A stretch of DNA of 64,000 nucleotides, taken from positions 124,001 through 188,000 of IMG/VR virus record IMGVR_UViG_3300008111_000002, one strand, 5' to 3'. Position numbers and translations under genes: made by a program. Shown piece by piece: positions 27,513-57,194 of the stretch (position 1 is the stretch's first letter; each line of letters opens with the position of its first letter). The notes beneath the pieces were generated by a model. The model saw only the letters and a program-made list of their open reading frames with translations, had not been told where the DNA came from and did no database searches.

Positions 27513-27544
27513 AAAAAGCCCAGAGCAACTTCTGGGCTTTTTTA
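27513..27544 (+). terminator. rho-independent terminator
   Basis: AAAAAGCCCAGA-GCAACT-TCTGGGCTTTTTT. Confidence 0.9.
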
Positions 27545-27549
27545 TTCAA

Positions 27550-27555
27550 TAAATA
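27550..27555 (+). promoter_or_regulatory. late promoter core (TAAATA)
   Basis: Immediately after the terminator and 5 nt before the ATG at 27561; no RBS. Confidence 0.65.
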
Positions 27556-27560
27556 AATGT

Positions 27561-29988: not shown

Positions 29989-29991
29989 ATA
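29986..29991 (+). promoter_or_regulatory. late promoter core (TAAATA)
   Basis: 5 nt before the ATG at 29997. Confidence 0.55.
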
Positions 29992-29996
29992 TACGT

Positions 29997-32879: not shown

Positions 32880-32885
32880 TAAATA
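32880..32885 (+). promoter_or_regulatory. late promoter core (TAAATA)
   Basis: 4 nt before the ATG at 32890; no RBS. Confidence 0.6.
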
Positions 32886-32889
32886 TAAT

Positions 32890-35382: not shown

Positions 35383-35400
35383 TATCATTTCCGCCTAGTT

Positions 35401-35427
35401 AAGGACTCTCCGGAGTCCTTTTCTTTT
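35401..35427 (+). terminator. rho-independent terminator
   Basis: AAGGACTC-TCCG-GAGTCCTT followed by TTCTTTT. Confidence 0.85.
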
Positions 35428-35459
35428 GGCAAAATTAATCAAAAAAACGTTGTTTTTTA

Positions 35460-36527: not shown

Positions 36528-36539
36528 TAATAAAATAAC

Positions 36540-36568
36540 GAGTATGGGTTCACGCCCATACTCTCTTT
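36540..36568 (+). terminator. stem-loop, probable terminator/attenuator after gp32
   Basis: GAGTATGGG-TTCACG-CCCATACTC followed by TCTTT. Confidence 0.65.
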
Positions 36569-36586
36569 GATTACAGGAAAACAATA

Positions 36587-37854: not shown

Positions 37855-38090
37855 AAGAAGACCTAATTGCCGATCTATGGAATGTGATTGTTGAGCACTT
37901 ACCAGAAAAATCTAAAAGTATTGTTGCAACAGATTTTGTTAATACTTTATTAGATTATGGTATTAAGGATAGTACTATTGAATCTTTATTAGGAGTAGAT
38001 CCCCATCTTGATCAAGCAATTGAATATGCAATTGACGGTGAAGAAATTGAGGATTCTGAAGAAGAAGATTATTACGAAGATGAGGATTAA
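37851..38090 (+). CDS. hypothetical acidic protein
   Basis: 79 aa, ATGA and TAATG coupling on either side. Confidence 0.65.
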   Translation: MKEDLIADLWNVIVEHLPEKSKSIVATDFVNTLLDYGIKDSTIESLLGVDPHLDQAIEYAIDGEEIEDSEEEDYYEDED

Positions 38091-38545
38091 TGAACTGGTA
38101 CGAAGCAGTTTCTAAAGATATCAGTAATATTCCGGATGCAGTGGCATTTTTTGAAAAAGAATTGTTAGATGCAAAACTGGAATGTAAAATCTTTGGCAAT
38201 ATAGAAAAAAATAGTGCTGCAATGCCCGGTGTGGTAGAGAATCGTTTTAATCAATTACAGGAAATTGAAGGTATCCTCGAATATCTTAATATTGAATTAA
38301 GACGACTAAAAAGTCAACACTTTCGTAAATATCTTGAAAGCTATCAACGATCGTTGAGCAGTAGAGACTGTGAAAAGTTTGTAGACGGTGAGGCAGACGT
38401 TGTAGACTTTGAAAAAATTATTAACGATTTTGCATTGTTACGTAACAAATGGCTTGGTATTATTAAAGCACTTGATCAAAAGCAGTGGCACTTGACTAAT
38501 ATTATTAAGTTGCGTGTAGCTGGGTTAGAGGATGCCACCTTGTGA
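38090..38545 (+). CDS. uvsY: recombination mediator UvsY
   Basis: Helical protein with ...KWLGIIKALDQKQWHLTNIIKLRVAG; located after UvsX. Confidence 0.8.
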   Translation: MNWYEAVSKDISNIPDAVAFFEKELLDAKLECKIFGNIEKNSAAMPGVVENRFNQLQEIEGILEYLNIELRRLKSQHFRKYLESYQRSLSSRDCEKFVDGEADVVDFEKIINDFALLRNKWLGIIKALDQKQWHLTNIIKLRVAGLEDATL

Positions 38546-39388
38546 ATTGTTAAACAATTCATCATGTGGAACTTCGTATGGATGGCCCTGATAAAACAGG
38601 GCTTTTTCTTGAGCACTACCGTCGTACCATTCGTCTAAATTATATTGACACCATGCAATGTGTTCATGCCACACATCTCTGTTAACTGGTTCTAACGGAT
38701 CTCTCCAATTGTCTAATGTTCTTTCACATGCTATCCAAGTTGGACACGGGCCTAGACTAATAACTTTTTTTCCGTACCAAAATGCTTCAGCAGTAATTGC
38801 AGAACTATAACTGACAACTAAATCTGCCCATTCAAAATCGCCGTCGATTCCAAACACGCCTTTAAATCCAACACTAGGATTTCCGTAATGTTGTACTCCC
38901 TTTTTACCAACCTTGTATCTAATTTTTACATTTGCACCCCGTGATTCAAAAAATGTTTTTAATTTTTCAGACCATTGTGTAATATCAAATCCTGTGAAAA
39001 TTCCTTGACTTTTTTTACTTGGAGCGATCAATACGTTTTTAATTTCTTTAACTTTCCAAGGCTGTTTTTCTAATCTAGTAGTGTTCCATCGAGAATAGGG
39101 AATTGATTTTAATTTAGTTGGTGCAAAAGAATTTATACTCACCCTGGCTGCTACTCTATGTTTTGAAACCCAAGATCCAAGATAAGGACGATTAATTGCT
39201 ATATAGGGATTTTTTGCCGTCATCCATGGCCCAATAAATCCTATAGGATTAGCGGGCACTATTAATGGTATTCCTGGATCAGCAGTTGTTATATCATGTA
39301 TATGAATTAATCTGCCGGTAAAACGTTCCCAACCTTTAATAAAAGGTTCGTCAAATTCATTAACGAGTATTTGATATTTTAATGCCAT
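38525..39388 (-). CDS. putative GT-B glycosyltransferase (capsule-biosynthesis/KpsS-like), paralogue 1
   Basis: Start MALKYQ (ATG 39388). VLIAPS, VVSYSSAITAEAFWYG and RDVWHEHIAWCQYNLDEW.DG blocks are shared with three paralogues. Confidence 0.55.
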   Translation of the reverse strand: MALKYQILVNEFDEPFIKGWERFTGRLIHIHDITTADPGIPLIVPANPIGFIGPWMTAKNPYIAINRPYLGSWVSKHRVAARVSINSFAPTKLKSIPYSRWNTTRLEKQPWKVKEIKNVLIAPSKKSQGIFTGFDITQWSEKLKTFFESRGANVKIRYKVGKKGVQHYGNPSVGFKGVFGIDGDFEWADLVVSYSSAITAEAFWYGKKVISLGPCPTWIACERTLDNWRDPLEPVNRDVWHEHIAWCQYNLDEWYDGSAQEKALFYQGHPYEVPHDELFNNSQGGIL

Positions 39389-39405
39389 TTTTGTCCGCTC
39401 TTTAA

Positions 39406-39433
39406 TATTTACCATTAACTGCTCTGATAAATA
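39406..39433. promoter_or_regulatory. divergent late promoters
   Basis: TATTTA 39406-39411 (minus) and TAAATA 39428-39433 (plus, 5 nt before the ATG at 39439). Confidence 0.65.
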
Positions 39434-39438
39434 TCAGC

Positions 39439-40131
39439 ATGAAAAACATTGTTTTAATTACTGGTGGTTTTGATCCAATACACTCCGGACACATATCATA
39501 TATCAACGCGGCAAGAGAGCTCGGCGATTCGTTAATTGTTGGAGTTAATTCTGACGAATGGCTACGTCGAAAGAAAGGGCAGAAGTTTATGCCTTGGGAA
39601 GAACGTGCAAGCATTGTAGCTAACTTATACAGTGTTAGTCGAGTGATAAATTTTGACGATAGCGATAATAGTGCTAAAGATGCTATCCGAAAAGTTAGAG
39701 CAATACATCCTAATGCTAATATTATCTTCGCCAACGGCGGAGATCGAACCAAAGAAAATATTCCAGAAATGGATCTACTTAAAGAAATGTTACACCTAGA
39801 ATTTGTATTTGGTGTCGGTGGAGTAGATAAAAAAAATTCTAGCAGTTGGATTTTACAAGAATGGAAAGCTCCCAAAACTGAACGCCCTTGGGGTTATTAT
39901 CGTGTACTACACGAAAATGGCAAGGAAGTTAAAGTTAAAGAATTAACTGTGGAACCAGGACAATGCCTTAGTATGCAACGTCATCAAAACAGAGCAGAAC
40001 ATTGGTTTATTGCAGAAGGTACTGCAGAAATCTACACAATTAATAGAAGCACAGATCAAGAATTAGTTGGAATTTTTCATAAACATCAAAGTTTACATAT
40101 TAAAAAAGACGAATGGCATCAAGGACTGTAA
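39439..40131 (+). CDS. cytidylyltransferase-like (TagD/RfaE family) domain fused to a truncated phosphomannose-isomerase-type cupin
   Basis: TGGFDPIHSGH, VGVNSDEWL.RKKG, FANGGDR and NSSS, then ERPWG.Y, LSMQRH..RAEHW. The cupin stops at WHQ, and its expected DIERK end lies in another frame. Confidence 0.85.
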   Translation: MKNIVLITGGFDPIHSGHISYINAARELGDSLIVGVNSDEWLRRKKGQKFMPWEERASIVANLYSVSRVINFDDSDNSAKDAIRKVRAIHPNANIIFANGGDRTKENIPEMDLLKEMLHLEFVFGVGGVDKKNSSSWILQEWKAPKTERPWGYYRVLHENGKEVKVKELTVEPGQCLSMQRHQNRAEHWFIAEGTAEIYTINRSTDQELVGIFHKHQSLHIKKDEWHQGL

Positions 40132-40152
40132 CGAAAGTGATATAGAAAGAAA

Positions 40153-40839
40153 ATGAAAGATATAATTCCAGTTTTTATTGGTTACGATCCAAGAGAAGCA
40201 ATCGCATATCATACATGTGTTAATAGTATTATTCGTAATTCGTCAAAGCCTGTAAGTATTGTTCCGGTGGCATTAAATTTATTTAAAGATTATTCTGAAA
40301 CACATACTGATGGTAGTAATCATTTTATCTATACTAGATTTTTAGTTCCCTGGTTAATGGGTTGGGCTGGCCATGCAATATTCATCGATGGTGACATGAT
40401 TGTACGTGGTGACATTGCCGAATTATGGGAAATGAGACAAATGTCCTACGATGTAATGGTTGTTAAACACGATTACAAAACAAAAATGCCTGTAAAATAT
40501 TTAGGAGCAAAAAATGAAGACTATCCTCGAAAAAATTGGTCTAGTGTTATTCTGTGGAATTGTAATTCTTTTCCTAACCGGAAACTTACTCCCGAGTTTG
40601 TCCAACAATCCACCGGCAGTTTCCTCCACCGCTTCTCGTGGTTAGATGACGAACGTATAGGAGAATTACCTAAAGAGTGGAATTGGTTACCTGACGAATA
40701 CGGTCCAAATCCAGATGCAAAGTTATTGCATTATACGTTAGGAACACCCTGCTTTCATGAGTTTGCTGGTACGCCAATGGGCAATGAATGGCATAAAGAA
40801 CGAATTCTAACTGAATACTGCCAACAAAGAGATATATGA
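40153..40839 (+). CDS. GT-A glycosyltransferase (GT8-like)
   Basis: VFIGYDPRE, F.YTRFLVP, FIDGDM, YPRKNWSSV, LPKEWNWL and LHYTLGTP motifs. Confidence 0.85.
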   Translation: MKDIIPVFIGYDPREAIAYHTCVNSIIRNSSKPVSIVPVALNLFKDYSETHTDGSNHFIYTRFLVPWLMGWAGHAIFIDGDMIVRGDIAELWEMRQMSYDVMVVKHDYKTKMPVKYLGAKNEDYPRKNWSSVILWNCNSFPNRKLTPEFVQQSTGSFLHRFSWLDDERIGELPKEWNWLPDEYGPNPDAKLLHYTLGTPCFHEFAGTPMGNEWHKERILTEYCQQRDI

Positions 40840-41636
40840 GTTGGATTTTTTTAAACAACACTAAAAAATCTCAATATATAGAAATCTTTGCTAAAGGTTG
40901 CGGCAGTGAAGTAACTTCCTATGAAGATTTTGTATACGAAAACAATACTAACCCGTTAGTAATTCGCGGTATACTTAAAGATAAATTAATTAAACGTTGC
41001 TGGGAAGATCAACGCACGTTTTATTATTTCGATACTGGGTATATTGGTAATGACGTATATAATAAAAACCCAAGTGGTTATAAATTTTGGCATAGAATAG
41101 TAAAAAATAATTTACAACACAGTGAAATTATTTCCAGGCCCGATGATCGTTGGCGTCGATTAGGGAAAGAAATAAAACCCTGGAAGACTCCTGGTAAAAG
41201 AATAATTATAGCTGCTCCTGACGAGAAACCTTGCAAGTTTTATGGAATAAATCTAGATCAATGGTTAGAAAATGTTATTAGTATGTTAAAACAATATACC
41301 GATAGACCTATTGTTATTAGACAACGACCTGCAGATAGAATAGATCGAAAACAAAATATTCCATTAACTCAAGAGTTAGAAAATGATGCATTTGCATTGA
41401 TAACATTCAATAGTGTTGCAGCAACAGAAGCAATTTTAAACGGGATTCCGGCATTTACATTAGCACCTGCTAATGCTGCAAGTCCTGTAAGTTTACAAGA
41501 CTTAACCAAGATAGAAACCCCGTATTACCCTGATAAGGATAAATTATATTCATGGGTATGCCACATGGCTTATGGTCAATTTCATACTGATGAATTAAGA
41601 AACGGTACTGCTAAAAGAATTTTGGAAGAAACATGA
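40836..41636 (+). CDS. putative GT-B glycosyltransferase (KpsS-like), paralogue 2
   Basis: DTGY, TDRPIVIRQRP, TFNSVAATEAILNGIP and W..HMAYGQF..DEL.NG motifs. Confidence 0.6.
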   Translation: MSWIFLNNTKKSQYIEIFAKGCGSEVTSYEDFVYENNTNPLVIRGILKDKLIKRCWEDQRTFYYFDTGYIGNDVYNKNPSGYKFWHRIVKNNLQHSEIISRPDDRWRRLGKEIKPWKTPGKRIIIAAPDEKPCKFYGINLDQWLENVISMLKQYTDRPIVIRQRPADRIDRKQNIPLTQELENDAFALITFNSVAATEAILNGIPAFTLAPANAASPVSLQDLTKIETPYYPDKDKLYSWVCHMAYGQFHTDELRNGTAKRILEET

Positions 41637-42337
41637 AATTACATTTTATTACAAGTATATCAAAAACGTACTGGAACGATACTGCAAGATATTGCATTCC
41701 AACTTGGAAATTACCGGGTAAGACAACCATATACATCGATCAACACGACGGAGATTTAGATTGGATAGTTGAAGTTCCCTTTCACAAAGAATTACTAAGT
41801 GTTCCAGAATTATCAAACAAAGAAGTAGGTAGATCTAAGGTAAGAAAATTTTGGGGCAAGTCGTGGGCGCAAATAGATGCAATCAGAAATAGGGGCGTAG
41901 ATGAAAGAATAATCTGGATTGATTCAGATGTTGAACAAATTGCAGATGTTGGAGAGGAAGATTTTAATTTTAATTTTTCAGAACCATTTGCAATGATGAA
42001 TTCTGGTGATAACGAAGATTGTTGGGAAACTGGTTTAGTAATTTTTAATCAACAATACGGCAAATTAAATGTTGCGACTCGTTTATATGAAAAAGTATGG
42101 CGTGATGAGGAACAATTATTTGGTTTATTTAGACCATATGATGCACACGTATTAGGTTATGTTGCAGAAGAGAGAACCTTTTTAAATTTATGTAATCAAC
42201 CTTGTAAAAATATTGATGCGTTATCTAATTCTAGATTTAGTAAATTTTTTAAACATTGGATTAATAAAGATAATAAAAAACTGTTGCAAGATCTAAAAAC
42301 AACACAACCAAGTGAAAACAGTAGCGATATATCATAA
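41633..42337 (+). CDS. putative GT-A glycosyltransferase
   Basis: RKFWGKSWA, IIWIDSD (DxD), ETGLVIFN and YDAHV; paralogue of 46930..47739. Confidence 0.6.
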   Translation: MKLHFITSISKTYWNDTARYCIPTWKLPGKTTIYIDQHDGDLDWIVEVPFHKELLSVPELSNKEVGRSKVRKFWGKSWAQIDAIRNRGVDERIIWIDSDVEQIADVGEEDFNFNFSEPFAMMNSGDNEDCWETGLVIFNQQYGKLNVATRLYEKVWRDEEQLFGLFRPYDAHVLGYVAEERTFLNLCNQPCKNIDALSNSRFSKFFKHWINKDNKKLLQDLKTTQPSENSSDIS

Positions 42338-43244
42338 ATCAGTTCCTAACGGAAAAAATTTAGAGAAGATACAACTTTTACAAAATTTTTCTCAAGGAGT
42401 TCGTGCAGCAGGTGATACTGTACTTGATGTAGATCACTATAGTGTAGTTGCGGCCGATGTTGGAGTAATACAAGGATGGATATCTGGAAAACCAGATGCG
42501 CAACACACCATATTAAGAAATAATGTAATAACTCAACAAAAATTTCTTAATAGATTTGTTGTATGTGCTGATAGTAATTTATTTCTTTATGCTAATACAG
42601 ATAATCCATTGCATTATCTAAGATATAGTTTTAATGACGTTTTTCCTAATCAAGGAATATATTGTGATACAGAAATAGATCCTATAAGATGGATTAAAAT
42701 CTCACAAAATCTTAATATACATCTTAAACCATATAGAGCATACGGCGATCATATTTTAATACTATTACAACGCAACGGTGGTTGGAGTATGTCTGGATAT
42801 GATGTACAAGATTGGGCTATATCTGTTATTGATACTATACGATCTTTTACAGATAGACCCATAGTAATTAGAGCACACCCTGGAGATAAAGCAGCTAGAA
42901 CTTATCTTAATCCAGACAGTCCGCATTGCAGAATTAAATTTTCTAAACGTGTAAGATTAAGTAATAATACTAGACTAACTGATGATTTAGTAAATTGTTG
43001 GGCTGCTGTAAATTATAATTCAAGTCCAGCAGTCGGTGCAGCAATTGAAGGAATTCCAATTTTTGTAACTGATCCTATTAGAAGTCAAAGTGCGGAAATT
43101 GCTAATAGAGATTTATCACAAATTGAAAACCCAATGTTACCAGATAGGCAAAAGTGGGTTGAAAGATTATCAATGTTTCATTGGAATTTTAACGAATTAA
43201 GATCTGGTGAATGCTGGTCGCATATGAGAAAATTTATTTCATAA
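42312..43244 (+). CDS. putative GT-B glycosyltransferase (KpsS-like), paralogue 3
   Basis: GTG start; HILILLQ, TDRPIVIRAHP, YNSSPAVGAAIEGIP and PDRQKW...W...EL.SG motifs. Confidence 0.6.
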   Translation: MKTVAIYHKSVPNGKNLEKIQLLQNFSQGVRAAGDTVLDVDHYSVVAADVGVIQGWISGKPDAQHTILRNNVITQQKFLNRFVVCADSNLFLYANTDNPLHYLRYSFNDVFPNQGIYCDTEIDPIRWIKISQNLNIHLKPYRAYGDHILILLQRNGGWSMSGYDVQDWAISVIDTIRSFTDRPIVIRAHPGDKAARTYLNPDSPHCRIKFSKRVRLSNNTRLTDDLVNCWAAVNYNSSPAVGAAIEGIPIFVTDPIRSQSAEIANRDLSQIENPMLPDRQKWVERLSMFHWNFNELRSGECWSHMRKFIS

Positions 43245-44058
43245 ATTCTTTTAACTCAGCTAATTGAATATCATAATTATTAACATTAAAACTAAAATCA
43301 GATCTAGTATTAATTAAAATTTTATTAACTGGTTTAGGTCCCTGGGTTCTAATTATTGTTTTATTTAAATTAAAGACCGAGTTTATTTTACATAATAAAT
43401 CATATTTGTTAATTTTAACATTGTTATCAACTAAATGGTATATTCCCGTTATTGTCGGATTTTGAATATACTGATCAATACATTTTGCTAATTGAAGAGT
43501 AGTAATACCATTCCACCAAGCATTATCCCATCCTTGTAATTCTTCATTAATATTGTTGTAGATAAAATTAAACAATCCTGTACCGTTCTTTTTTAATTCA
43601 GGACCAATTATACTCATTCTAAATGTAATATCTTTAGAATTGTTAATTTCACCAAAGGATTTTGATTTACCATATGAATTGGTTTCTGTATGTAAATCTG
43701 TCTCTATGTAGTTTCCTTGTTTGCCGTCAAACACGCAATCAGTTGACAAATGAATTAATTTTGTTTTAGAATCTTTAATTTCGTTTTCAATGCAATGGGG
43801 AAGCCAGGAATTAATAATTGCTGCTCTATCCGGACGATCAATGCTATCCTTGACTAACAGTCCTATGCAGTTAATTATGAAATCAAAATCGTTTTTGGAT
43901 TCATTAAAAAAAGATTTAGTAATTACAGTGTTTTCAATATCTAGTCCATAATCGGCATTATTTCTAGCTAAAGTTTGAACAGTATATCCTTGAGATGTAA
44001 GATATTTTTTAATAACATGACCCGCCATGCCATTAGAGCCAACTATTAAAACTTTCAT
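43234..44058 (-). CDS. NDP-4-keto-6-deoxysugar reductase (RmlD/RfbD-like SDR)
   Basis: GSNGMAG Rossmann motif, INCIG, HLSTDCVFDG and YGKSK. Confidence 0.88.
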   Translation of the reverse strand: MKVLIVGSNGMAGHVIKKYLTSQGYTVQTLARNNADYGLDIENTVITKSFFNESKNDFDFIINCIGLLVKDSIDRPDRAAIINSWLPHCIENEIKDSKTKLIHLSTDCVFDGKQGNYIETDLHTETNSYGKSKSFGEINNSKDITFRMSIIGPELKKNGTGLFNFIYNNINEELQGWDNAWWNGITTLQLAKCIDQYIQNPTITGIYHLVDNNVKINKYDLLCKINSVFNLNKTIIRTQGPKPVNKILINTRSDFSFNVNNYDIQLAELKEFMK

Positions 44059-45035
44059 ATAAATTTACCTTTCTCAAGCATATCTTTTATTTGATCTTTG
44101 TCCATTATCTTTGTTTTAGAAGAAAATTCAGGATATGGAAAATTTTTATGATCTTGGTATCTAGTTGCTAATGCTTGATTATAACCTGCAGGTAGTGTAA
44201 CAAAGTAATGTTCATCATAACAGTATGTTAATTGAGATTCGTGATGTGATATTAACATTTCGTCTAATTTTTCGCCAGGTCTCATTCCAGTTTCAATTAC
44301 CTGAACTTTTCCATATACATCCATTAATACTTCTGCAAGATCTTTAATATAACAAGATGGCATATTCATAACGAATGTTTCACCACCTATGCTATCAATA
44401 GATGCTTTAAACAATAAAAATATAGCCTCTTCTAATGTTAAAAAGAATCTAGTCATTTTCATGTCTGTTATTGTTAACGGCCCACCAGATTTTATTTGTT
44501 CAATAAAATAAGGAATAACCGATCCGCTGGATCCCATTACGTTACCGCCTCTAATACAAACAAATTTTGTATAATCGTTAAGATCATTTGCTTGGATTAT
44601 AATTTTTTCGCCAACAGCTTTTGTCATTCCGTAAAGATTAATAGGTTCGACTGCTTTATCTGAACTTACATCAATTACTTTCTTTACACGATTTTCAATG
44701 GCAGCATTGACTATATTAGTAGTACCGTTGATATTTGTTTTAATTGTTTCCTGAACATTTTCTTCACACACGGGCACATGTTTTAATGCAGCAAGATGGA
44801 AAATGTAATCAACTCCTTTAGTTGCTTGTCTTACTGTATCATAGTCTCTAACATCTCCTATTACAAATTTTAACTTAGGATTGTTAAATTTTCTTTTCAT
44901 CAATACTTGTTGTAATTCTCCACGAGAAAAACAAATAATTTCTGCAACTTCGTACTTTTTAAGAAGTAAACTGATTAAAGTCTGCCCCCACGATCCTGTT
45001 GCCCCACTAACAAAAATTCTAGTTCCGTTAAACAT
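44055..45035 (-). CDS. UDP-GlcNAc 4,6-dehydratase (PseB/CapE/FnlA family)
   Basis: GATGSWG, GDVRD, HLAALKHVP.CE, SSDKAVEPINLYGMTK, GNVMGSSGSVIP, MTRF and RPGEKL. Confidence 0.9.
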   Translation of the reverse strand: MFNGTRIFVSGATGSWGQTLISLLLKKYEVAEIICFSRGELQQVLMKRKFNNPKLKFVIGDVRDYDTVRQATKGVDYIFHLAALKHVPVCEENVQETIKTNINGTTNIVNAAIENRVKKVIDVSSDKAVEPINLYGMTKAVGEKIIIQANDLNDYTKFVCIRGGNVMGSSGSVIPYFIEQIKSGGPLTITDMKMTRFFLTLEEAIFLLFKASIDSIGGETFVMNMPSCYIKDLAEVLMDVYGKVQVIETGMRPGEKLDEMLISHHESQLTYCYDEHYFVTLPAGYNQALATRYQDHKNFPYPEFSSKTKIMDKDQIKDMLEKGKFI

Positions 45036-45588
45036 TATTGTTCCTTAAAATTTCAATCATTTCGCTGTCATTGTATAGTTTTATAGTATTAATAAATTCT
45101 TTAAATTCGTAATATGATATATTTTGATATTCGAGTGGGGGATTTATTTTAGCCGCCGGTATACGAATAAATGTAAGACCGAAATTGTTATTCATAGTGT
45201 ATATTTCAAAATTAGTTTCTTTTATAAAATACATTAGTAATCTAAAAGAATCAGAACAAAATTTTGACGAGGTATGTTTTAGCGATGGAGGAACCATGTC
45301 ATGCATAATAACCCATTTATTAGCATGGTTAACTGAATTATTAAAATCTTTGAGAACATATTCGTAATCATGATTTGCATCAATAAAAATAATATCAAAC
45401 TTTTTTGAATTATCTATACTAGAAAAATATTCATCAGTTGTACCGGTAAACAATGCATTGCCGTTAATATCAACTGAAAATTTTTCTTTACAGTTTATAG
45501 ATCGAAAGTTTTCATTTCTAAAAACACCAAGCTCTAAATAGGTATATTTTTCTATTTCTGGAATGTTATTAATTATTGAACAAGACAC
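45028..45588 (-). CDS. class I SAM-dependent methyltransferase
   Basis: YLELGV, FDIIFIDANHDYE and IMHD motifs. Confidence 0.8.
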   Translation of the reverse strand: MSCSIINNIPEIEKYTYLELGVFRNENFRSINCKEKFSVDINGNALFTGTTDEYFSSIDNSKKFDIIFIDANHDYEYVLKDFNNSVNHANKWVIMHDMVPPSLKHTSSKFCSDSFRLLMYFIKETNFEIYTMNNNFGLTFIRIPAAKINPPLEYQNISYYEFKEFINTIKLYNDSEMIEILRNNNV

Positions 45589-46256
45589 TATTTTGCTCCT
45601 TTAGTTTGGATCCAACCTCTAGCCTTAGATGGTTGTATAACAGAATGAGAAAAATCTAAAAATGTGTCATTGGTAACTGTACCCAAATCATATAAATGAG
45701 AATAATTTTCTTCTGCAATTTTTCTTTTAATAAATGATGCTGATCGTTTTGCTTGCGGATGCCATTCTGGATGAGATTGATCTACCCATTTTGCCCAAAA
45801 ATGTGGTCTTGATAGATCGTAATTCCAACTCGAATGAGACTTGTTATATACTGCTTCTTCGGTAATATACATCGATATATTTGCTTCCTTCATTCTTATA
45901 TAAAAATCATCATCTTCATAACCGCCACCGACATATCTTTCATCTAACATACCAACTCTACGAAATAATTCTTTTTTAAATCCAAAAAATCCAAAGCGAT
46001 AAAGTGCAACTAGCCCGTACCCTTGCTTAATAAGTTCTACAATTTTTTGTATTTGTTCTTGAGTTGGACGAACCTTATCACTAAGCACAATTACTATTTC
46101 AGATGGACATTGAGATATACAACTATTAACTAATTTTGAAAACGAAGGATACCCTGTACCATCAAAATAATTAATTTCTTCTGGGGCTGCGCCGGTCTGT
46201 ATTTCTGGATATATCCAAGGTTTGTTAGATATTACATAACAGTTATAATCTTTCAT
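45588..46256 (-). CDS. GT-A glycosyltransferase (GT2/GT7-like)
   Basis: FSKLVN and VGMLDERYVGGGYEDDDF.IR motifs. Confidence 0.75.
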   Translation of the reverse strand: MKDYNCYVISNKPWIYPEIQTGAAPEEINYFDGTGYPSFSKLVNSCISQCPSEIVIVLSDKVRPTQEQIQKIVELIKQGYGLVALYRFGFFGFKKELFRRVGMLDERYVGGGYEDDDFYIRMKEANISMYITEEAVYNKSHSSWNYDLSRPHFWAKWVDQSHPEWHPQAKRSASFIKRKIAEENYSHLYDLGTVTNDTFLDFSHSVIQPSKARGWIQTKGAK

Positions 46257-46933
46257 TGATAGTTATCCCAAAATGTTGTTCTTGTTAAACTCTTTTTTCC
46301 ATCTTTTTTAATCAATGCAATTCCCATAACATGACTATGAATTTCAATAATTACATGATGTTGATTTATAGCATTGTCTGCTGGAAGATAGGTATTTTTA
46401 TATGTATCCACAAGTTTTTTTGCTGCATGTGGCTTTAATGCATATCCACAACATCCCGGCATTGAACTTTGAAAATATGGTTCTGCTTTTGGATCTCCTT
46501 GTGGATCTTCAAGATACTGCCGATACTTTTCAGTCTTAGTTGGATGCCCTAATGCTAAAACTAGTACGTCTGTCCAATCAATTGGAATAAATGGTCTTCT
46601 TAAAACAATATCATCTTCCCATATAATAATTGGTTCATTTAATTCTACACATTTTTGCCATAGTCTATAATGACTATAAAAGCATCCTTTAACACCAGGG
46701 GAACTTCCTTTTAAATTAGGAACAGCATCGGGATCAATTTCAATATCTGGACCTTTAATGCCAAACGGATGCCAAGTTCTATGTTCAAGTTCCATCATTT
46801 TCACAGCATCGGTGCCATATGTTCCTTCAAACAACTCAACAGGCATATTGTATTCTTCTAATTGTTTTTGTAGGGTTAGTGCTGTTTCAAAAGATGATTG
46901 TATTTTAGAAAGACAAATGATAAAACTTTTCAT
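46253..46933 (-). CDS. glycosyltransferase family 25
   Basis: Start MKSFIICL (ATG 46933); GCFYSHYRLWQKC, IIWEDD and GYAL.P.AAKKL...PAD motifs. Confidence 0.85.
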   Translation of the reverse strand: MKSFIICLSKIQSSFETALTLQKQLEEYNMPVELFEGTYGTDAVKMMELEHRTWHPFGIKGPDIEIDPDAVPNLKGSSPGVKGCFYSHYRLWQKCVELNEPIIIWEDDIVLRRPFIPIDWTDVLVLALGHPTKTEKYRQYLEDPQGDPKAEPYFQSSMPGCCGYALKPHAAKKLVDTYKNTYLPADNAINQHHVIIEIHSHVMGIALIKKDGKKSLTRTTFWDNYQ

Positions 46934-47739
46934 TTCCAATAATCCTCTTTTCTTTTAATTCTTAGATCTTTTTGATGACTGCGGCCATACTGTTTTCTTT
47001 CGCCTTTGAGGTGATCTAAGTATCCACCCCATTCGCAGTTTATTAACGGGTGACCTTCTCCTGTAATAACACCTTGACTCCAGTTGTGCTGTATTAAAAA
47101 AGGAAATCTTTTACGTACATCATCAAATACATAACTGTCATGCCATTCATCTAAGTTAAAGATTCCCGCTTCGGCTTTGTCATACATCCATTGAAATTGA
47201 TTTAAAAAATTTCTAGTCATTTCAGAACGTAAATTAAGAGAATATAAACCACATTCTGAAAATTTGTTGTCTCTACCTAGGTAACACAGATCTTTATCGA
47301 TTGGTATTAGACGCTGTATCTCACTTAGACTAATCGGACTATGACAAACCATATCTGCGTCCATCCATATTAACACATCTGCATCACAATTTTTAGCACA
47401 ATGGAAGATAGTATAAACTTTATGAGCAAATCTTATTGCATCCCATTTGAAAGGTTTATGACTGTCTTTTCTAGCAGCCAATCTTGGAAAACTTGAGATG
47501 TCTCCACTGGCATGGGGAACATTTTTCCAACGTTCTTTGAAGGCTGTGAGTTCAGGAACACCGGTATCGAGATCAATTAATTCAACATTAGCGCCTTGCG
47601 GTACATATGGGTTAACTCTTTCGGGATACAGGTATAACTTTACTTCTTTTGGCCAATTGATCAAAAAAGATTCGATCATTTTTTTAGCATAAGACTTATA
47701 ACCATCTTCATTAAATGTTGTAACTACTGCATATTTCAT
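46930..47739 (-). CDS. putative GT-A glycosyltransferase
   Basis: Start MKYAVVTTF (ATG 47739); RFAHKVY, LIWMDAD, SECG, EWHDSYVFD and DHLKG motifs. Confidence 0.72.
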   Translation of the reverse strand: MKYAVVTTFNEDGYKSYAKKMIESFLINWPKEVKLYLYPERVNPYVPQGANVELIDLDTGVPELTAFKERWKNVPHASGDISSFPRLAARKDSHKPFKWDAIRFAHKVYTIFHCAKNCDADVLIWMDADMVCHSPISLSEIQRLIPIDKDLCYLGRDNKFSECGLYSLNLRSEMTRNFLNQFQWMYDKAEAGIFNLDEWHDSYVFDDVRKRFPFLIQHNWSQGVITGEGHPLINCEWGGYLDHLKGERKQYGRSHQKDLRIKRKEDYWK

Positions 47740-48137
47740 TAGTTTGCCTTTTTCCAAAAATTTATACTTTTATGATTACCCAAACTTTCATAATTATATT
47801 GCCAAAGATGTTTTAAGATCTTTTTACCCACCGGTTCACCATGTATTAAAATGATTCCTGCTCTATTAAGGCTGGCAACTGGTGTGAAATTACCAATCTC
47901 CCATAGACATGGCTCATCCACTACTAGTAAATTAAATTCTGGTAATGTTTTTATATCAGTAAAGTTTAGTCTTGGTATTAAATTTTTACTTTTAATCTCT
48001 GGTCGTTGAGTGTCATAGACAAACACCGTGTTGAATCCTTCAAGAAGATCTGGAATATTAATAAAATTACTACCTAATACCACAGCGGTATCACGTTTTG
48101 TAATAATTGGTTCTATACGTTTTAAAAATTTACTCAT
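47739..48137 (-). CDS. hypothetical protein (glycosylation island)
   Basis: 132 aa, TAATG-coupled to the downstream GT. Confidence 0.55.
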   Translation of the reverse strand: MSKFLKRIEPIITKRDTAVVLGSNFINIPDLLEGFNTVFVYDTQRPEIKSKNLIPRLNFTDIKTLPEFNLLVVDEPCLWEIGNFTPVASLNRAGIILIHGEPVGKKILKHLWQYNYESLGNHKSINFWKKAN

Positions 48138-48149
48138 TACGACAAGAAT

Positions 48150-48167
48150 TAAATACTCTGTTATTTA
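48150..48167. promoter_or_regulatory. face-to-face late promoter cores
   Basis: TAAATA 48150-48155 (plus) and TATTTA 48162-48167 (minus) in the 40-nt gap between divergent genes. Confidence 0.5.
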
Positions 48168-48177
48168 TTTTTAAAAA

Positions 48178-49011
48178 ATGCGCATAAAATTATATCGTGA
48201 AAATGGTGCTCTTGGCAGTAACGTGGTTTTTGACGCTTTAGAACAAGGTTTTAAACGTCTTGGACATCAAATTGTTGACAGCAACGAGGACATTCCGGTG
48301 ATATGGAGTGTACTTTGGTTCGGCCGTATGCAGCCCAATCAACAAATTTACAATTTTTTTAAAAATAAAAATAAACCGGTAATGATAGTCGAAGTCGGTT
48401 CACTGAAAAGGGGAATTTCATGGAAACTTTCATTGGAAAATATCAACGGTGACGGAAAATTTAATCAAGAAAATCATTTACAAAAAAATAGACAAAAAGT
48501 TTTAGGTGTTGAGTTAAAAGATTTTCAAACAAACAGAAAACCCTCAATCCTATTATTGGGTCAACATGATCGCAGCCTCCAATGGGAAGGACTGCCATCA
48601 GTTAGTGACTGGATTTTTCAAAAAATTTCAGAAATTAGAAAATTTACCGATCGTACAATTGTAGTAAGACCACATCCACGTTGTCGTATTAATTATTTTT
48701 CAATACCAAATGTTGTTATCGAAACAACAAATCCAATACCTAACACATATTCTGAATTTGATATTAATTTTTCTCATCACTGCGTAATAAATCATAATAG
48801 TGGTACCACAGTACAGGCAGCAATTAATGGAGTTCCATTAATTTGTGATCCTAGTGCATTAGCACATCCGGTATCCTGTCAACTTAACGAAATAGAGACG
48901 CCATACCTCAAAGATAGAACACAGTGGTTTGAATACATTCTTCATACAGAATGGTTGTTGGACGAATTCATCCAGGGAACTCCACAAGAAAGGTTGATTT
49001 CATCGATGTGA
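48178..49011 (+). CDS. putative GT-B glycosyltransferase (KpsS-like), paralogue 4
   Basis: EVGSLKR, ILLLGQ..RSLQ, TDRTIVVRPHP, HNSGTTVQAAINGVP and DRTQW...EW..DE..QG motifs. Confidence 0.62.
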   Translation: MRIKLYRENGALGSNVVFDALEQGFKRLGHQIVDSNEDIPVIWSVLWFGRMQPNQQIYNFFKNKNKPVMIVEVGSLKRGISWKLSLENINGDGKFNQENHLQKNRQKVLGVELKDFQTNRKPSILLLGQHDRSLQWEGLPSVSDWIFQKISEIRKFTDRTIVVRPHPRCRINYFSIPNVVIETTNPIPNTYSEFDINFSHHCVINHNSGTTVQAAINGVPLICDPSALAHPVSCQLNEIETPYLKDRTQWFEYILHTEWLLDEFIQGTPQERLISSM

Positions 49012-49022
49012 GATGCTATTAT
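48994..49022 (+). promoter_or_regulatory. sigma70-type promoter (extended -10)
   Basis: TTGATT-17 nt-TATTAT with TGn, 6 nt before the ATG at 49029. Confidence 0.55.
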
Positions 49023-49028
49023 TTTAGC

Positions 49029-50228
49029 ATGACCATCATCAGATATGTTGAAGACGTATTCATTGAATTTGCTCATGCAGTTGACCTGCGGCAAGTTTCT
49101 GTTCAGCCCCAGGACATACCAGCCATTAATAGTTTTCAGAATGTAATTCTCACAGGCAAACCGTTAACTAGAGCGCAATCTTCGTTTGTGTTGAAAATTT
49201 TAACCAAATACAAAATTGGCTCAAAGATGGTCGGTATTGACTACCACGACTCAATTGACAATCCCACATGGCGCCATCCGTTTAGAGTTATTGACAACAG
49301 TCGAAGTGTATCTGTAGAGCAGGACGAAGATGGTGGTTTACAAATTTTGATGAAATTTCCATATCAAATTAAAGAACCATTTGAAAAGGAATTACCTAAT
49401 TTAAAATCAATGTGGGATTCTACGTTAATGTCTAGAGTTATTAAACTAAAAGATGCTAACGTAATTGCCATTAGAGAATTCTGTGAAAAATACGAATTTG
49501 TGTTAGATCAAAGTTTCGTCGATTTGTGCGATTCAGTGGAAGAAATCTGGAATCAAGAAGAAAATTTTCTTCCACACTCTGTTGTCAAAAATAAGTTTGT
49601 AACATTGATTAATGCTAATGAAGATGCAAAAGAATATTTTGAAATCAATAAAACAGACAGTTTAGAAGAAAACATGTTCCTAGCAAAGAGCATGAATTTT
49701 TGCCTAAAATTGGAAGAAAAAAATCCAACGTTAATTCAAAAAATTGCCACTGCTCACGACAATTACTTTTATACCAACGACATTAAAAATGTGTTTGAAA
49801 TTTTAAAATCATTACCAACTGCAAAAGTAGCAGTGCTTGTTGATCGTACCTCCGAGACTCTAAACTTTGTTAAAAATTTTGTAAATTTTGCAGAAAATAC
49901 AAATTTTCCAAAAAACAATATTCGTGTATGTTTTAGGCTAAGTGCCGAAGAGGATAAAGATTTAAAATTTAATCAATGGATCAAAGAAAATCAAATGAAT
50001 GGTCCTGTGGACTCTGGAAGAATTTATATTTTTCGTCATAAGCCCGCAAAGTGGTTGTTTGCAGGAAAAGAAAATGTTAAAATTATAGTTACAAACAGTT
50101 TATTTACAAACACTAATATGAGCATTAGTCATTGGATGGACTCACACCCGTGTGTGATTTTTGTTGGAGAACAAAAACCTGCAATGAGAGCATTGTCAAC
50201 TAAGGAAAAAAAGATTGTCAACTTGTAA
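49029..50228 (+). CDS. hypothetical protein upstream of UvsW
   Basis: Start reassigned to MTIIRY (ATG 49029); 399 aa, overlapping the UvsW start. Confidence 0.65.
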   Translation: MTIIRYVEDVFIEFAHAVDLRQVSVQPQDIPAINSFQNVILTGKPLTRAQSSFVLKILTKYKIGSKMVGIDYHDSIDNPTWRHPFRVIDNSRSVSVEQDEDGGLQILMKFPYQIKEPFEKELPNLKSMWDSTLMSRVIKLKDANVIAIREFCEKYEFVLDQSFVDLCDSVEEIWNQEENFLPHSVVKNKFVTLINANEDAKEYFEINKTDSLEENMFLAKSMNFCLKLEEKNPTLIQKIATAHDNYFYTNDIKNVFEILKSLPTAKVAVLVDRTSETLNFVKNFVNFAENTNFPKNNIRVCFRLSAEEDKDLKFNQWIKENQMNGPVDSGRIYIFRHKPAKWLFAGKENVKIIVTNSLFTNTNMSISHWMDSHPCVIFVGEQKPAMRALSTKEKKIVNL

Positions 50229-57118: not shown

Positions 57119-57194
57119 AAAAATAAAAGAATACATTAAAAGAAAACGTAGATTAAAAGAACTACGTAAAAGAGATCCGTTTATCTATAAATGA
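57102..57194 (+). CDS. 30-aa basic microprotein MFRLIEKIKEYIKRKRRLKELRKRDPFIYK (absent from the ORF track)
   Basis: AAGGA RBS at 57091, ATG 57102; stop overlaps the carbamoyltransferase start (ATGA). Confidence 0.7.
   Translation: MFRLIEKIKEYIKRKRRLKELRKRDPFIYK

Follow-up and report, generated by a model that had tools for sequence, protein, structure and literature searches.

An uncultured freshwater jumbo phage of the Rak2/CBB type carries a 10-12 kb block of sugar-transferring and sugar-making enzymes, which shares a late-type promoter-like motif with the structural genes and is found at the same site, with swapped sugar pathways, in related phages. The block most likely builds a variable sugar coat on the virus particle, although nothing in the present analysis demonstrates the target. 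The stretch analysed (hereafter the window) was 64,000 nucleotides of IMG/VR record IMGVR_UViG_3300008111_000002 (positions 124,001 to 188,000). The observation of an earlier note, 14 contiguous genes in four blocks flanking two divergent TAAATA pairs, was confirmed, whereas its interpretation as a self-contained, late-expressed pathway for a virion glycan was supported only in part.

Gene content and predicted folds of the island

All 14 ORFs (g1-g14, 38525-49011) were found in the four blocks, namely g1 (38525-39415, minus strand), g2-g6 (39439-43244, plus strand), g13-g7 (48137-43234, minus strand) and g14 (48178-49011, plus strand), the last of which runs on into g15 and the helicase. They encode nine glycosyltransferase (GT)-like proteins, a UDP-GlcNAc 4,6-dehydratase/RmlD-type reductase pair, a methyltransferase and a nucleotidyltransferase-cupin fusion. 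The left flank is a UvsY-like recombination mediator (38090-38545, plus strand; phrog_231), 48-50% identical to the gene after RecA in CBB and Vibrio phage 2.275.O, and the right flank is a UvsW-like helicase (50215-51669, plus strand; ResIII and Helicase_C), 47% identical to CBB_281. Between the island and the helicase lies g15 (48951-50228, plus strand), a clade-specific protein of 425 aa of unknown function, which may belong to the island or to the helicase. It had no Pfam hit and no homologue in CBB or 2.275.O, the Atlas cluster search was uninformative, and it was present at 31-58% identity in all relatives that reach that far and evolves fast.

The family assignment that had been proposed as a check on each gene was performed by profile searches and by comparison with PDB structures. 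g2 (39439-40131, plus strand) is a HIGH-type nucleotidyltransferase (PF01467; TIGR02199, 78.5 bits; PDB 5x9q), closest to HldE domain II/HldC/TagD, fused to a PMI-type cupin (PF01050). The cupin half is broken, since a 53-bp deletion after 40122 shifts the frame and removes the last ~27 residues, giving 230 aa against 254-256 aa in homologues. A vestigial out-of-frame '..SDIERK' end remains at about 40133-40156, and a relative's RNA-library contig carries 280 letters where the window has 230. g3 (40153-40839, plus strand) is a GT8-like GT-A glycosyltransferase (PF01501, 32.6 bits; phrog_28018, 4.5e-37; WbbM GT8 domain, PDB 6u4b), 45% identical to Mosig_00188. g7 (43234-44058, minus strand) is an RmlD-type NAD(P)H 4-ketoreductase (PF04321, RmlD_sub_bind, 76 bits; TIGR01214, 71 bits; PDB 2ggs). 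g8 (44055-45035, minus strand) is a UDP-GlcNAc 4,6-dehydratase of the PseB/FnlA/CapE type (PF02719, Polysacc_synt_2, 310 bits; PDB 4j2o, 2gn4 and 3vvb), with the PseB and FnlA models scoring 328 and 249 bits, respectively, both below the equivalog cut-offs. g9 (45028-45588, minus strand; GC 26%) is a class I SAM methyltransferase (Methyltransf_24, 27.2 bits, just over cut-off), g10 (45588-46256, minus strand) is a GT2/GT7C-like GT-A (PF02709, 27.2 bits; PF10111) and g11 (46253-46939, minus strand) is a GT25 glycosyltransferase (PF01755, 73.9 bits).

g12 (46930-47757, minus strand) gave only a sub-threshold GT2 match by sequence, but its confident AF2 model (pLDDT 93.4) is of a retaining-type GT-A with DxD, matching GT6 alpha3GalT/ABO and GT8 glycogenin/LARGE1/XXYLT1 by Foldseek. 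It appears virus-specific and is 34% identical to Mosig_00189. g5 (41633-42337, plus strand), which is variable among relatives, is a DxD GT-A and a remote paralogue of g12, as determined through an intermediate paralogue (hhalign 4e-24 and 1.2e-8) and by an alignment with shared invariant DxD, E and H columns, so that the two WxDxD paralogues of the note hold. g13 (47739-48137, minus strand) is a fast-evolving protein of 132 aa of unknown function, without a Pfam or PHROG hit, present in most relatives at 28-62% identity.

g4 (40836-41636, plus strand), g6 (42312-43244, plus strand) and g14 (48178-49011, plus strand) are paralogues (E 1e-15 to 1e-20), and g1 is a distant one (BLASTP to g4, 2e-7) that is variable among relatives. 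Pfam, including Capsule_synth, detected nothing in them. The g6 AF2 model (pLDDT 93.4) was searched by Foldseek, and the top 21 PDB hits were all retaining Kdo transferases (KpsC, WbbB and KrkA), so that the description of these four proteins as KpsS-like is right at the level of fold. However, the copies in the window fail the catalytic-nucleophile test for retaining Kdo transferases. g6 keeps Q153 and the CMP-binding R187-x-H189-P190 but has Gly where the nucleophile Asp of QXXXD should be, g14 has Q-x-x-x-S and R-P-H-P, the orthologues of g4 conserve PDEKP and R-x-R instead of the Q and HP motifs, and g1 lacks both the Q and RXHP motifs, so that even the donor class is uncertain. Extra paralogues in relatives carry a full QXXXD. 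The proteins belong to an unannotated, apparently viral family of 5,822 clusters, and the nearest 100 Atlas clusters for g6 and for g12 were 100% viral. The best viral structural matches of the g6 model include four paralogues in the eukaryotic giant virus TetV-1, which has no LPS to modify, and Caulobacter phage CcrColossus.

The absence of membrane proteins, which the note had named as an expectation to be examined by transmembrane prediction, was borne out: no stretch of 19 residues reached a Kyte-Doolittle value of 1.6 in any island protein, and the same held for real genes among 289 island ORFs of related loci. No flippase, polymerase or other membrane protein was found. The claim that the island is self-contained is not supported, as only one donor pathway is encoded and most donors must come from the host.

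Promoter-like motifs and related loci

The TAAATA hexamers lie at 39406-39411 (minus strand) and 39428-39433 (plus strand), as promoter-like sites for g1 and for g2-g6, and at 48150-48155 (plus strand) and 48162-48167 (minus strand), as a TAAATA-N6-TATTTA pair between g13 and g14. g1 probably starts at the ATG at 39388 (Met10), because the minus-strand TAAATA lies inside the longer ORF. The motif is far from randomly placed: of 47 TAAATA copies, 17 lie in the 4.6% of the window that is non-coding, and for ATAAATA it is 9 of 11. ATAAATA also precedes the three fibre genes at 599, 3966 and 11459, the tail sheath at 23480, and the CBB_276- and CBB_289-like structural genes at 32890 and 55337, respectively, but is absent before ssb, uvsX, helicase, primase and DnaB. 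The same motif was independently proposed as the late promoter of the relatives CBB and GAP32 (PMC5259590). The late-promoter reading thus gains real support, although this evidence is based on motifs and transcript timing, which the note had listed as a test, was not obtained. The g13/g14 pair is conserved in six related loci (L007, L011, L015, L028, L031 and L034) while the surrounding bases vary.

The block is an insertion at a fixed site. The cultured relatives CBB and Vibrio phage 2.275.O have UvsY, one gene and the helicase in order, whereas the window and 36 IMG/VR loci carry the island there instead. A core of g2, g3, g4, g6, g12, g13 and g14 is kept, and the sugar-pathway cassette, here g7-g11, is swapped. 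L014 carries a dehydratase, a reductase and a UDP-GlcNAc 2-epimerase; L011, L025 and L028 carry a GDP-mannose 4,6-dehydratase with TylF/MT24/FkbM methyltransferases; L028 carries a UDP-Glc dehydrogenase, an ArnA-like enzyme and a GT17; and L034 carries a GT6. A methyltransferase of L011 is homologous to g9 (4.9e-10). Cassette GC is 26-32% against about 37% for the window. The dN/dS was 0.03-0.22 for every island gene that gave an estimate, indicating purifying selection (g13 and g14 gave none, and dS was mostly saturated). The trio of g12, g3 and g4/g6 recurs in the T4-like pelagiphage Mosig and in Caulobacter phage CcrBL9, where the cluster, with an FkbM methyltransferase, directly follows the tail-fibre genes and precedes the lysozyme. 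In another phage, a double-module member of the KpsC-fold family sits next to a CTP_transf_3 (KdsB/NeuA-type) enzyme, a SIS isomerase and a GT29.

Comparison with known glycosylation systems

The fibril-glycosylation clusters of Megavirinae (Mimivirus, Megavirus and Moumouvirus) are likewise virus-encoded cytoplasmic machineries of nucleotide-sugar pathways, many GTs and sugar-modifying enzymes, with 6-33 genes at a conserved locus beside a helicase and clade-specific content, and they include the 4,6-dehydratase/reductase route to UDP-L-RhaNAc (Mg534/Mg535) and, with a 2-epimerase, to L-QuiNAc (PMC10117803), comparable with g8/g7 and with the L014 cassette. Those viruses infect eukaryotes, their glycans on fibrils were shown chemically, and the core families of the island (KpsC-fold GT-B and the g12 GT-A) are different; sequence-level orthology of the GTs was not tested here. 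In mycobacteriophages of the Che8/Corndog type, phage-encoded soluble GTs glycosylate capsid and tail-tube proteins in the cytoplasm of the infected cell (Freeman et al. 2023, cited in PMC12619734). Those systems are small, with a few GTs next to structural genes in Gram-positive-type hosts, whereas the island has nine GTs, its own sugar pathway and cassette variation and lies in the replication module, and glycosylation is not demonstrated here. In chlorovirus PBCV-1, virus-encoded GT-A enzymes (A064R and partners) and a methyltransferase build a conserved-core, variably decorated, partly O-methylated glycan on the capsid protein in the cytoplasm, in a eukaryotic host and from dispersed genes; homology was not examined.

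The retaining beta-Kdo glycosyltransferases KpsC/KpsS (GT107), WbbB (GT99) and KrkA (GT140) share the modified GT-B architecture, and the (K/R)XHP motif and the carboxylate-binding Gln are kept in g6 and g14. Besides the altered nucleophile position, the island proteins differ in being phage-encoded, single-module and about 270-310 aa, and neither donor nor acceptor was assayed. The GT sets of the LOS/LPS outer core (GT8 of the WaaO/WaaJ/LgtC type and GT25 of the Lic2A/LgtB type) are also soluble enzymes without transmembrane segments that assemble a short, variable oligosaccharide stepwise in the cytoplasm, but the island has no lipid A-core context, heptosyltransferase or WaaA, and its genes are phage-borne, carry a late-type promoter motif and sit with virus-specific partner families. 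Phage DNA glycosylation pathways (T4 alpha/beta-GT, RB69/DLP3 arabinosyl-5hoC and 5mYOX-linked GTs) also use phage-encoded GTs near replication genes, sometimes with a sugar isomerase and a nucleotidyltransferase, but their defining base-activating enzyme, a ThyA homologue or 5mYOX with a C5-MTase, is absent from the island and its scanned variants and was not found among the window genes that were scanned, and GT number and sugar chemistry are far richer here.

Alternative readings and the proposed product

Glycosylation of virion proteins is the best-supported reading, held with moderate confidence at about even odds, but nothing here demonstrates it. It is favoured by the insertion at a fixed site, the conserved core with swapped cassettes, the late-type promoter motif, the lack of membrane machinery in any variant, the virus-intrinsic look of the core families, the recurrence of the g12, g3 and g4/g6 trio in unrelated phages, the Megavirinae and mycobacteriophage precedents, the donor-binding motifs and the purifying selection. 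No acceptor was identified, no protein-initiating transferase was recognised, and the phage is uncultured, so that there is no virion chemistry. The island sits in the replication/recombination module rather than the structural one. The Ser/Thr argument for the giant fibres made in the note is weak, as their Ser+Thr content of 20-21%, against 10-15% for other proteins, is usual for fibres and not mucin-like. The two alternatives that the note had allowed, host-surface remodelling and DNA hypermodification, are weakened but not excluded.

Host envelope remodelling, although unlikely, survives best among the rivals. In this view, the soluble GTs would act at the cytoplasmic face of the inner membrane on host lipid-linked acceptors (lipid A-core/LOS, or a KpsS/KpsC-type Kdo-glycolipid), and the host's MsbA/Lpt or ABC exporters would display the altered glycan, blocking superinfection or stopping progeny from adsorbing to infected cells and debris. 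GT8, GT25 and KpsC/WbbB/KrkA-fold enzymes are the classic LPS-core, LOS and capsule-linker families, acting on lipid-linked intermediates at the inner face of the membrane, and they also lack transmembrane segments, so that the absence of such segments here does not discriminate. A WavE core-GT family gene neighbours a family member in L047, the nucleotidyltransferase half of g2 is closest to heptose-1-phosphate adenylyltransferase, an LPS inner-core pathway enzyme, and the cassette variability resembles O-antigen loci. On the other hand, the late-type motif shared with structural genes leaves little time for export before lysis, the core families appear virus-specific rather than borrowed from host LPS loci and recur in phages of very different hosts (SAR11, Caulobacter and probable Bacteroidota) and in a eukaryotic giant virus without LPS, and in CcrBL9 the module lies in the tail-fibre/lysis region.

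Less likely still is another soluble product, a free or protein-bound cytoplasmic glycan that is not part of the virion, such as a glycosylated non-structural phage or host protein, or an oligosaccharide or glycolipid released at lysis as a decoy or matrix. Nothing ties the enzymes to a particular acceptor, there is no export machinery, and g13 and g15 could be carriers. However, there is no precedent for such a large, conserved and diversifying locus serving a non-virion soluble product, and cassette-type diversification implies exposure to an external discriminating agent.

DNA hypermodification, in which a hydroxylated or hydroxymethylated pyrimidine would carry a multi-sugar chain to evade restriction, is very unlikely. 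It is favoured by the location among recombination and replication genes, by known DNA-glycosylation clusters with a phosphosugar isomerase, a sugar-1-P nucleotidyltransferase and up to three GTs, by the resemblance of some DNA GT-A enzymes to GT8/WaaJ-type enzymes and by a dNMP kinase at 22429-23127. Against it, no thymidylate-synthase homologue, 5mYOX/TET enzyme, C5-methyltransferase or dCTPase was found in the island, in the scanned genes of the window or in the roughly 20 scanned variable-cassette ORFs of relatives; such pathways are usually clustered; the dNMP kinase is a core gene of the whole CBB group, which lacks hmC-glycosylation genes; nine GTs plus O-methyltransferases and 6-deoxy-HexNAc synthesis far exceed any known DNA glycan; the promoter motif is late-type, whereas DNA modification must accompany replication; and the best viral matches of the g6 model are capsule-type proteins, a DNA alpha-glucosyltransferase appearing only at rank 38 (E 7e-3).

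What the analysis established directly is the make-up of the island from soluble glycosyltransferases and nucleotide-sugar enzymes, its conserved core, its replaceable low-GC cassette, the purifying selection on its genes within the estimates obtained and the promoter-like motif shared with structural genes; the scheme for its product is deduced from these. In this scheme, late in infection g8 and g7 would convert host UDP-GlcNAc into a UDP-2-acetamido-2,6-dideoxy-L-hexose (L-RhaNAc-type), g6 and g14 would use a host CMP-ulosonic acid, most simply CMP-Kdo, the GT-A enzymes would use host UDP-hexoses and g9 would O-methylate a sugar. Together they would build a conserved inner glycan with a strain-variable outer part directly on phage virion proteins (fibres, sheath or capsid decoration) before assembly, which would need no lipid carrier or export and would give each phage lineage its own surface 'serotype'.

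Genomic context and gene content of the island

The window, with about 37% GC, encodes giant fibre proteins, a gp15-like tail protein, a tail sheath, terminase, gp32-like SSB, UvsX, UvsY, a UvsW-like helicase, primase and DnaB. UvsX is 62-71% identical to that of Vibrio phage 2.275.O, Pectobacterium phage CBB, Cronobacter phage GAP32, Xanthomonas XbC2 and Sinorhizobium Phosso, and the window therefore comes from a jumbo myovirus of the Rak2/CBB supergroup. An IMG/VR contig of 209,836 bp (locus L004) is identical over the region, and all close relatives come from lake, freshwater or river metagenomes. No cultured phage shares the island at the DNA level, since a megablast search of the island against 50,697 phage records returned no match. 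A profile search of genome contigs with g6 orthologues returned only three MAG/SAG contigs, which are themselves phage DNA. Phage contigs carrying the island core are filed inside a Lishizhenia (Flavobacteriales) MAG and a 'Bacteroidota bacterium' MAG, and a g6 relative also sits on a 47.5-kb contig of a single-cell SAR11 genome (records L041, CAZHPL010000101.1; L042, SAR11 SAG-MED31; and P0013). No host was identified, and these records are possible host clues or binning artefacts, the two MAG-binned contigs being weak hints of Bacteroidota/Flavobacteriales. Among the fibres, at 599-3943 and 12538-18294, the 1,114-aa protein carries five CBM5/12 (chitin-binding type) modules and the 1,918-aa one carries a Laminin_G_3/ConA-like lectin domain, whereas the 2,472-aa protein has no Pfam hit at all.

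The observation of the earlier note was confirmed, as all 14 ORFs which it had listed (g1 to g14, numbered along the window) are present and form four blocks, namely g1 (-), g2-g6 (+), g13-g7 (-) and g14 (+). Assignment of each gene by profile searches, which had been proposed in the earlier note as a test, identified g2 as a HIGH-type nucleotidyltransferase plus a PMI-type cupin, g3 as GT8, g7 as an RmlD-type reductase, g8 as a UDP-GlcNAc 4,6-dehydratase, g9 as Methyltransf_24 (marginal), g10 as GT2/GT7C-like and g11 as GT25. Searches with Pfam, NCBIfam and PHROGs gave nothing for g1, g4, g6 and g14, or for g5, g13 and g15, and the glycosyltransferases (GTs) among them were resolved by other means. 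g4, g6 and g14 are clear paralogues, with g1 as a distant one. g12 models confidently as a retaining-type GT-A resembling GT6 and GT8 enzymes, and g5 is its remote paralogue through an intermediate found in relatives. This gives nine GT-like proteins, as the earlier note had estimated. The absence of transmembrane segments had been predicted there as well, and it was borne out: no hydrophobic segment was found in the 14 proteins, nor in real genes among 289 island ORFs of relatives. No priming phosphoglycosyltransferase, Wzx/Wzy or ABC transporter, as in Und-P-dependent O-antigen/capsule loci, was found by Pfam in the island or in the scanned cassettes of relatives.

Three points of the observation were corrected. 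Firstly, g2 is broken: its homologues are 254-256 aa, whereas the window allele has a 53-bp deletion after 40122, which shifts the frame and removes the last ~27 residues of the cupin, and the old C-terminal codons are still visible out of frame just before g3. The same allele is in three contigs from three samples, and a relative's contig in an RNA library carries the undeleted length. Secondly, g1 probably starts at Met10 (39388), because the minus-strand TAAATA lies inside the longer ORF. Thirdly, g15 (48951-50228) has no counterpart in CBB or 2.275.O and is present in all relatives that reach that far, and the clade-specific insertion may therefore extend to 50228.

Conserved core, variable cassette and promoter motifs

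In CBB and 2.275.O, the order is SSB, RecA/UvsX, UvsY, one gene and helicase, whereas about 10.5-11.7 kb lies between UvsY and the helicase here. Thirty-six IMG/VR loci (L-numbered below) carry a relative of g6, and in all those long enough, the island lies at the same site. g2, g3, g4, g6, g12, g13, g14 and g15 are conserved, while g1, g5 and g7-g11 come and go. The replaced segments encode other sugar chemistries: dehydratase, reductase and UDP-GlcNAc 2-epimerase with GT2s and a methyltransferase in L014; GDP-mannose 4,6-dehydratase with TylF, MT24 or FkbM methyltransferases in L011, L025 and L028; UDP-glucose dehydrogenase, an ArnA-like enzyme and GT17 in L028; and GT6, a methyltransferase and an epimerase in L034. 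The number of KpsC-fold paralogues (the g4/g6/g14 type) varies from three to six. The cassette genes of the window have 26-32% GC against about 37% overall. For every gene that gave an estimate, dN/dS is 0.03-0.22, similar to UvsX and the helicase, although dS is largely saturated and no estimate was obtained for g13 or g14. In two relatives, the GT8-like g3 is part of a 477-489-aa protein of roughly double length (L025:8571-10004, L028:8535-10004), and the Atlas also lists 557-aa viral proteins combining a GT8 domain with a region structurally like the KpsC-fold protein, which hints at functional coupling of the two enzymes. In one relative, the UvsW-like helicase is split into two ORFs (L011:17167-19933; ORFs at 17167-18183 and 19061-19933) separated by about 880 bp, suggesting an intron, a homing-endonuclease insertion or an intein-like element.

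The hexamer TAAATA is strongly concentrated in the 4.6% of the window that is non-coding, with 17 of 47 copies there, and 9 of 11 for ATAAATA. It lies upstream of the fibre genes at 599, 3966 and 11459, the tail sheath at 23480, the homologues of the CBB virion proteins CBB_276 (32890) and CBB_289 (55337), the latter embedded among replication genes, and at both island junctions. It is absent upstream of ssb, uvsX, the helicase, primase, the carbamoyltransferase and DnaB. The distribution is that of a T4-type late promoter, i.e. a TATAAATA-like -10 element upstream of late or structural genes and not of replication genes, although the exact T4 octamer is rare (2 copies against 10 expected). 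ATAAATA was independently derived from the upstream regions of structural genes of CBB and GAP32 and proposed as the late promoter, served by a gp55-like sigma factor (PMC5259590). The TAAATA-N6/7-TATTTA pair between g13 and g14 is conserved in loci whose flanking bases differ. The CBB 'middle' promoter motif TGAAACG was searched for as a counter-marker for replication genes, but it is not used in this phage, as its only copies are inside fibre genes. The timing of expression had been named beforehand as a point on which the late reading could fail, and the above is good motif-level evidence that the island is transcribed with late genes, but it is not a measurement: no RNA run contained this DNA, and contigs from four freshwater or river metatranscriptomes only show that relatives' uvsY, g2 and g3 are present in RNA libraries, with no direction or 5' ends. 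Six genes have TAAATA followed by only 5-6 bases and then ATG (21615-21627, 27550-27563, 29986-29999, 32880-32892, 39428-39441 and 60325-60337), with no room for a Shine-Dalgarno sequence, and if transcription starts about 6 nt after the motif, as at T4 late promoters, these late mRNAs would be leaderless. Other late genes (599, 3966 and 11459) have a 19-22 nt leader with a clear AGGA/GGTG. A third divergent TAAATA pair (21599-21620) lies between the leftward tail operon (gp15-like 18944-20389 and 20389-21651) and the rightward gene at 21625, and its minus-strand motif lies inside the annotated TTG-start ORF, so that gene probably starts at a downstream ATG. Clear GC-rich hairpin plus T-run terminators (11385-11458, 27494-27560, 35383-35459 and 36528-36586) lie directly before a promoter-like site or the next gene, for example 11392-11416 before the ATAAATA of gene 11459, and 27516-27544 before that of gene 27561.

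A predicted KpsC-fold family and the inferred sugar donors

The structure of g6 was modelled by AlphaFold on 36 homologues (pLDDT 93.4), and PDB ranks 1-21 of the model are all retaining beta-Kdo transferases, namely KpsC, WbbB and KrkA (GT99/GT107/GT140), with E 3e-8 to 1e-5 and TM about 0.45-0.54, so that the modified GT-B fold shared by these enzymes is predicted for g6. A four-sequence profile searched against PDB gave only spurious hits (Ika8, SOD), and the 36-sequence profile gave only a marginal WbbB hit (E 0.7), which was used solely for the motif alignment. None of 36 family members hits Pfam PF05159 Capsule_synth at E<0.1, only one related Atlas cluster carries that domain, in 18% of members, and Pfam on fused or long family members was uninformative. 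A profile of the paralogues finds 5,822 clusters (50% identity) in 1.84 billion proteins, and g6 alone has 2,693 close relatives, of which none of the 120 listed is given a functional name by any source. The nearest Atlas clusters are all viral. In the viral structure library, the best matches (TM 0.6-0.75) are four paralogues of Tetraselmis virus 1 (TetV-1), two of them annotated 'capsule polysaccharide biosynthesis protein', Caulobacter phage CcrColossus and uncultured Caudovirales.

Retaining Kdo transferases are defined by a QXXXD motif (nucleophile Asp, carboxylate-binding Gln) and a (K/R)XHP CMP-binding motif shared with sialyltransferases (PMC12887879). The latter is kept in g6 (R-A-H-P, aligned to WbbB 'RAHPG') and g14 (R-P-H-P), but not in g4 (R-Q-R-P) or g1 (R-Y-K-V), and family-wide R is 96%, H 92% and P 94% conserved. 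The QXXXD motif is absent from all four window copies, as g6 has QRNGG, g14 QHDRS, g4 PDEKP and g1 SKKSQ. Family-wide, Q is 95% conserved, but position Q+4 is D in only 38%, S in 37% and G in 17%. Each pattern is conserved among its own orthologues. A full QXXXD, together with RXHP, is found only in extra paralogues of relatives (L011:9001-10023, L013:8088-9086, L015:8985-10004 and L015:10906-11883). The proteins therefore resemble CMP-sugar-acid transferases in fold and nucleotide site, whereas by the catalytic criterion the window's copies are not members of the retaining Kdo-transferase families. Use of CMP-beta-Kdo and transfer with retention were not assayed, and the support for a CMP-ulosonic donor is circumstantial. 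A 596-aa double-module KpsC-fold protein, with the same two-module layout as bacterial KpsC, lies directly after a CTP_transf_3 (KdsB/NeuA-type) gene and a SIS isomerase in an unrelated low-GC (27%) phage contig with a TubZ/PhuZ-like tubulin (L045:960-12863), whose glycan cluster also contains another KpsC-fold gene, two methyltransferases, a GT29 sialyltransferase-like gene, an epimerase, two GT1s and a GT2. In addition, the host of TetV-1 makes 2-keto sugar acids for its theca (PMC10762512).

For g8, PF02719 (Polysacc_synt_2) scores 310 bits over residues 7-279, and PDB 4j2o (1.8e-69) and 2gn4 (2.6e-67) are matched, in agreement with a full-length, short soluble dehydratase of the PseB/FnlA/CapE type. 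The NCBIfam equivalog cut-offs were not reached for PseB (327.9 bits against 407.75) or FnlA (248.8 bits against 730), and the exact sugar and its stereochemistry were therefore not fixed. g8 and g7 are adjacent and co-oriented, and form the first two steps of the 6-deoxy-L-HexNAc routes, as in Megavirus Mg534/Mg535 of the Mg534-536 pathway. The bacterial counterparts are WbvB/WbvR (with WbvD) and FnlA/FnlB (of FnlABC), and g7, RmlD-type with 274 aa, is like WbvR rather than the longer FnlB/CapF type. The third enzyme, a 2-epimerase, is present in L014 (Epimerase_2, 297 bits). The nucleotidyltransferase half of g2 is closest to heptose-1-phosphate adenylyltransferase (HldE domain II/HldC), then to ethanolamine-phosphate and glycerol-3-phosphate cytidylyltransferases, and its cupin is of the mannose-6-phosphate isomerase type, from which no substrate was deduced. 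A TagD/TagF-type (CDP-glycerol) reading of g2 plus g4/g6/g14 was considered, but no TagF-like structure is among the top 50 PDB matches, and a phage TagF-type protein ranks only 49th in the viral library. An obligatory pairing of g2 with the KpsC-fold GTs was also rejected, because the pelagiphage Mosig and Caulobacter phage CcrBL9 have the GTs without a g2 homologue nearby. A NodU/CmcH-type carbamoyltransferase (57191-58660; Carbam_trans_N + C, E 1e-51), inserted between primase and DnaB, has no counterpart at this position in CBB or Vibrio phage 2.275.O, and it could O-carbamoylate a sugar or another substrate and may or may not be linked to the glycan island 8 kb away. All other donors must come from the host, so the island is not self-contained as the earlier note had claimed.

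Possible acceptors and biological meaning

The interpretation of the earlier note, i.e. a glycan built late in infection and placed most plausibly on virion proteins, was partly supported. The gene content, the fixed site with its core and cassette, and the motif distribution were read directly from the sequences, while late timing is deduced from a motif, and donors and acceptor are inferred from fold, motifs and gene neighbourhoods. Virion proteins are the best-supported acceptor, at about even confidence, based on the late-type promoter class, on core families that appear virus-specific and occur in a eukaryotic giant virus, and on the recurrence of the g12/g3/KpsC-fold trio in Mosig and in CcrBL9, where it follows the tail-fibre genes and precedes the lysozyme. 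The locus is also built like the Megavirinae fibril-glycosylation clusters, with a fixed site beside a helicase, 6-33 genes and clade-specific content. However, no acceptor or initiating enzyme is recognisable, the fibres' 20-21% Ser+Thr is ordinary for fibres, and, the phage being uncultured, these are context arguments without any virion chemistry. A host glycolipid acceptor is less likely, though GT8, GT25 and KpsC-type enzymes normally serve lipid-linked LPS or capsule intermediates and are also soluble. Another soluble product is considered unlikely. DNA glycosylation is the least probable, since known pathways cluster with a thymidylate-synthase homologue or a 5mYOX (plus C5-MTase), none of which is present in the island, in the window genes scanned (within 64 kb of a genome of at least 210 kb) or in the scanned cassettes of relatives, and since the window's dNMP kinase, considered as a hint of modified DNA, was rejected as a core gene of the CBB group, which lacks hmC-glycosylation genes.

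Autonomous viral glycosylation clusters are known in giant viruses, and small ones in mycobacteriophages. New here are the scale in a phage (nine GTs), the core-plus-cassette organisation at a fixed locus across an abundant uncultured clade, and the large, apparently virus-specific KpsC-fold family with a frequently replaced nucleophile. No paper found in the literature searched describes this clade's island or this family; the 'moraphage' paper (PMC12619734) describes a different lineage, and a preprint on huge-phage envelopes says nothing specific. A further reading, which is held only tentatively, is that phages and at least one algal giant virus share a very large, unannotated, virus-specific family of KpsC/WbbB-fold, CMP-binding glycosyltransferases (about 5,800 clusters at 50% identity), many members of which have replaced the covalent-catalysis Asp. 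In this view, the jumbo-phage clade would use the host's CMP-Kdo-type sugar acids to lay down a conserved, LPS-like inner glycan on virion proteins, and a swappable cassette would then add lineage-specific 6-deoxy, amino and O-methyl sugars. The result would be a viral counterpart of core plus O-antigen, giving phages 'serotypes' under diversifying selection from grazers, competing phages, or adsorption to non-host surfaces.

Virus-encoded, host-independent glycosylation is established for giant eukaryotic viruses, and in phages it is known only on a small scale, in mycobacteriophages. This island would extend it to an abundant clade of freshwater jumbo phages, with an architecture, a fixed locus with a conserved core and swapped sugar cassettes, that is typical of surface antigens under diversifying selection. 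The analysis also exposes a large uncharacterised glycosyltransferase family related to the capsule and O-antigen Kdo transferases, whose altered catalytic motif matters for glycoenzymology. If the glycan sits on virions, it bears on phage adsorption, on stability and removal by grazing in lakes, on immune recognition of therapeutic phages, and on how 'auxiliary metabolic' glycosyltransferase genes in viromes should be interpreted. If the glycan instead goes to host LPS or to DNA, the island is still an unusually rich example of either strategy.
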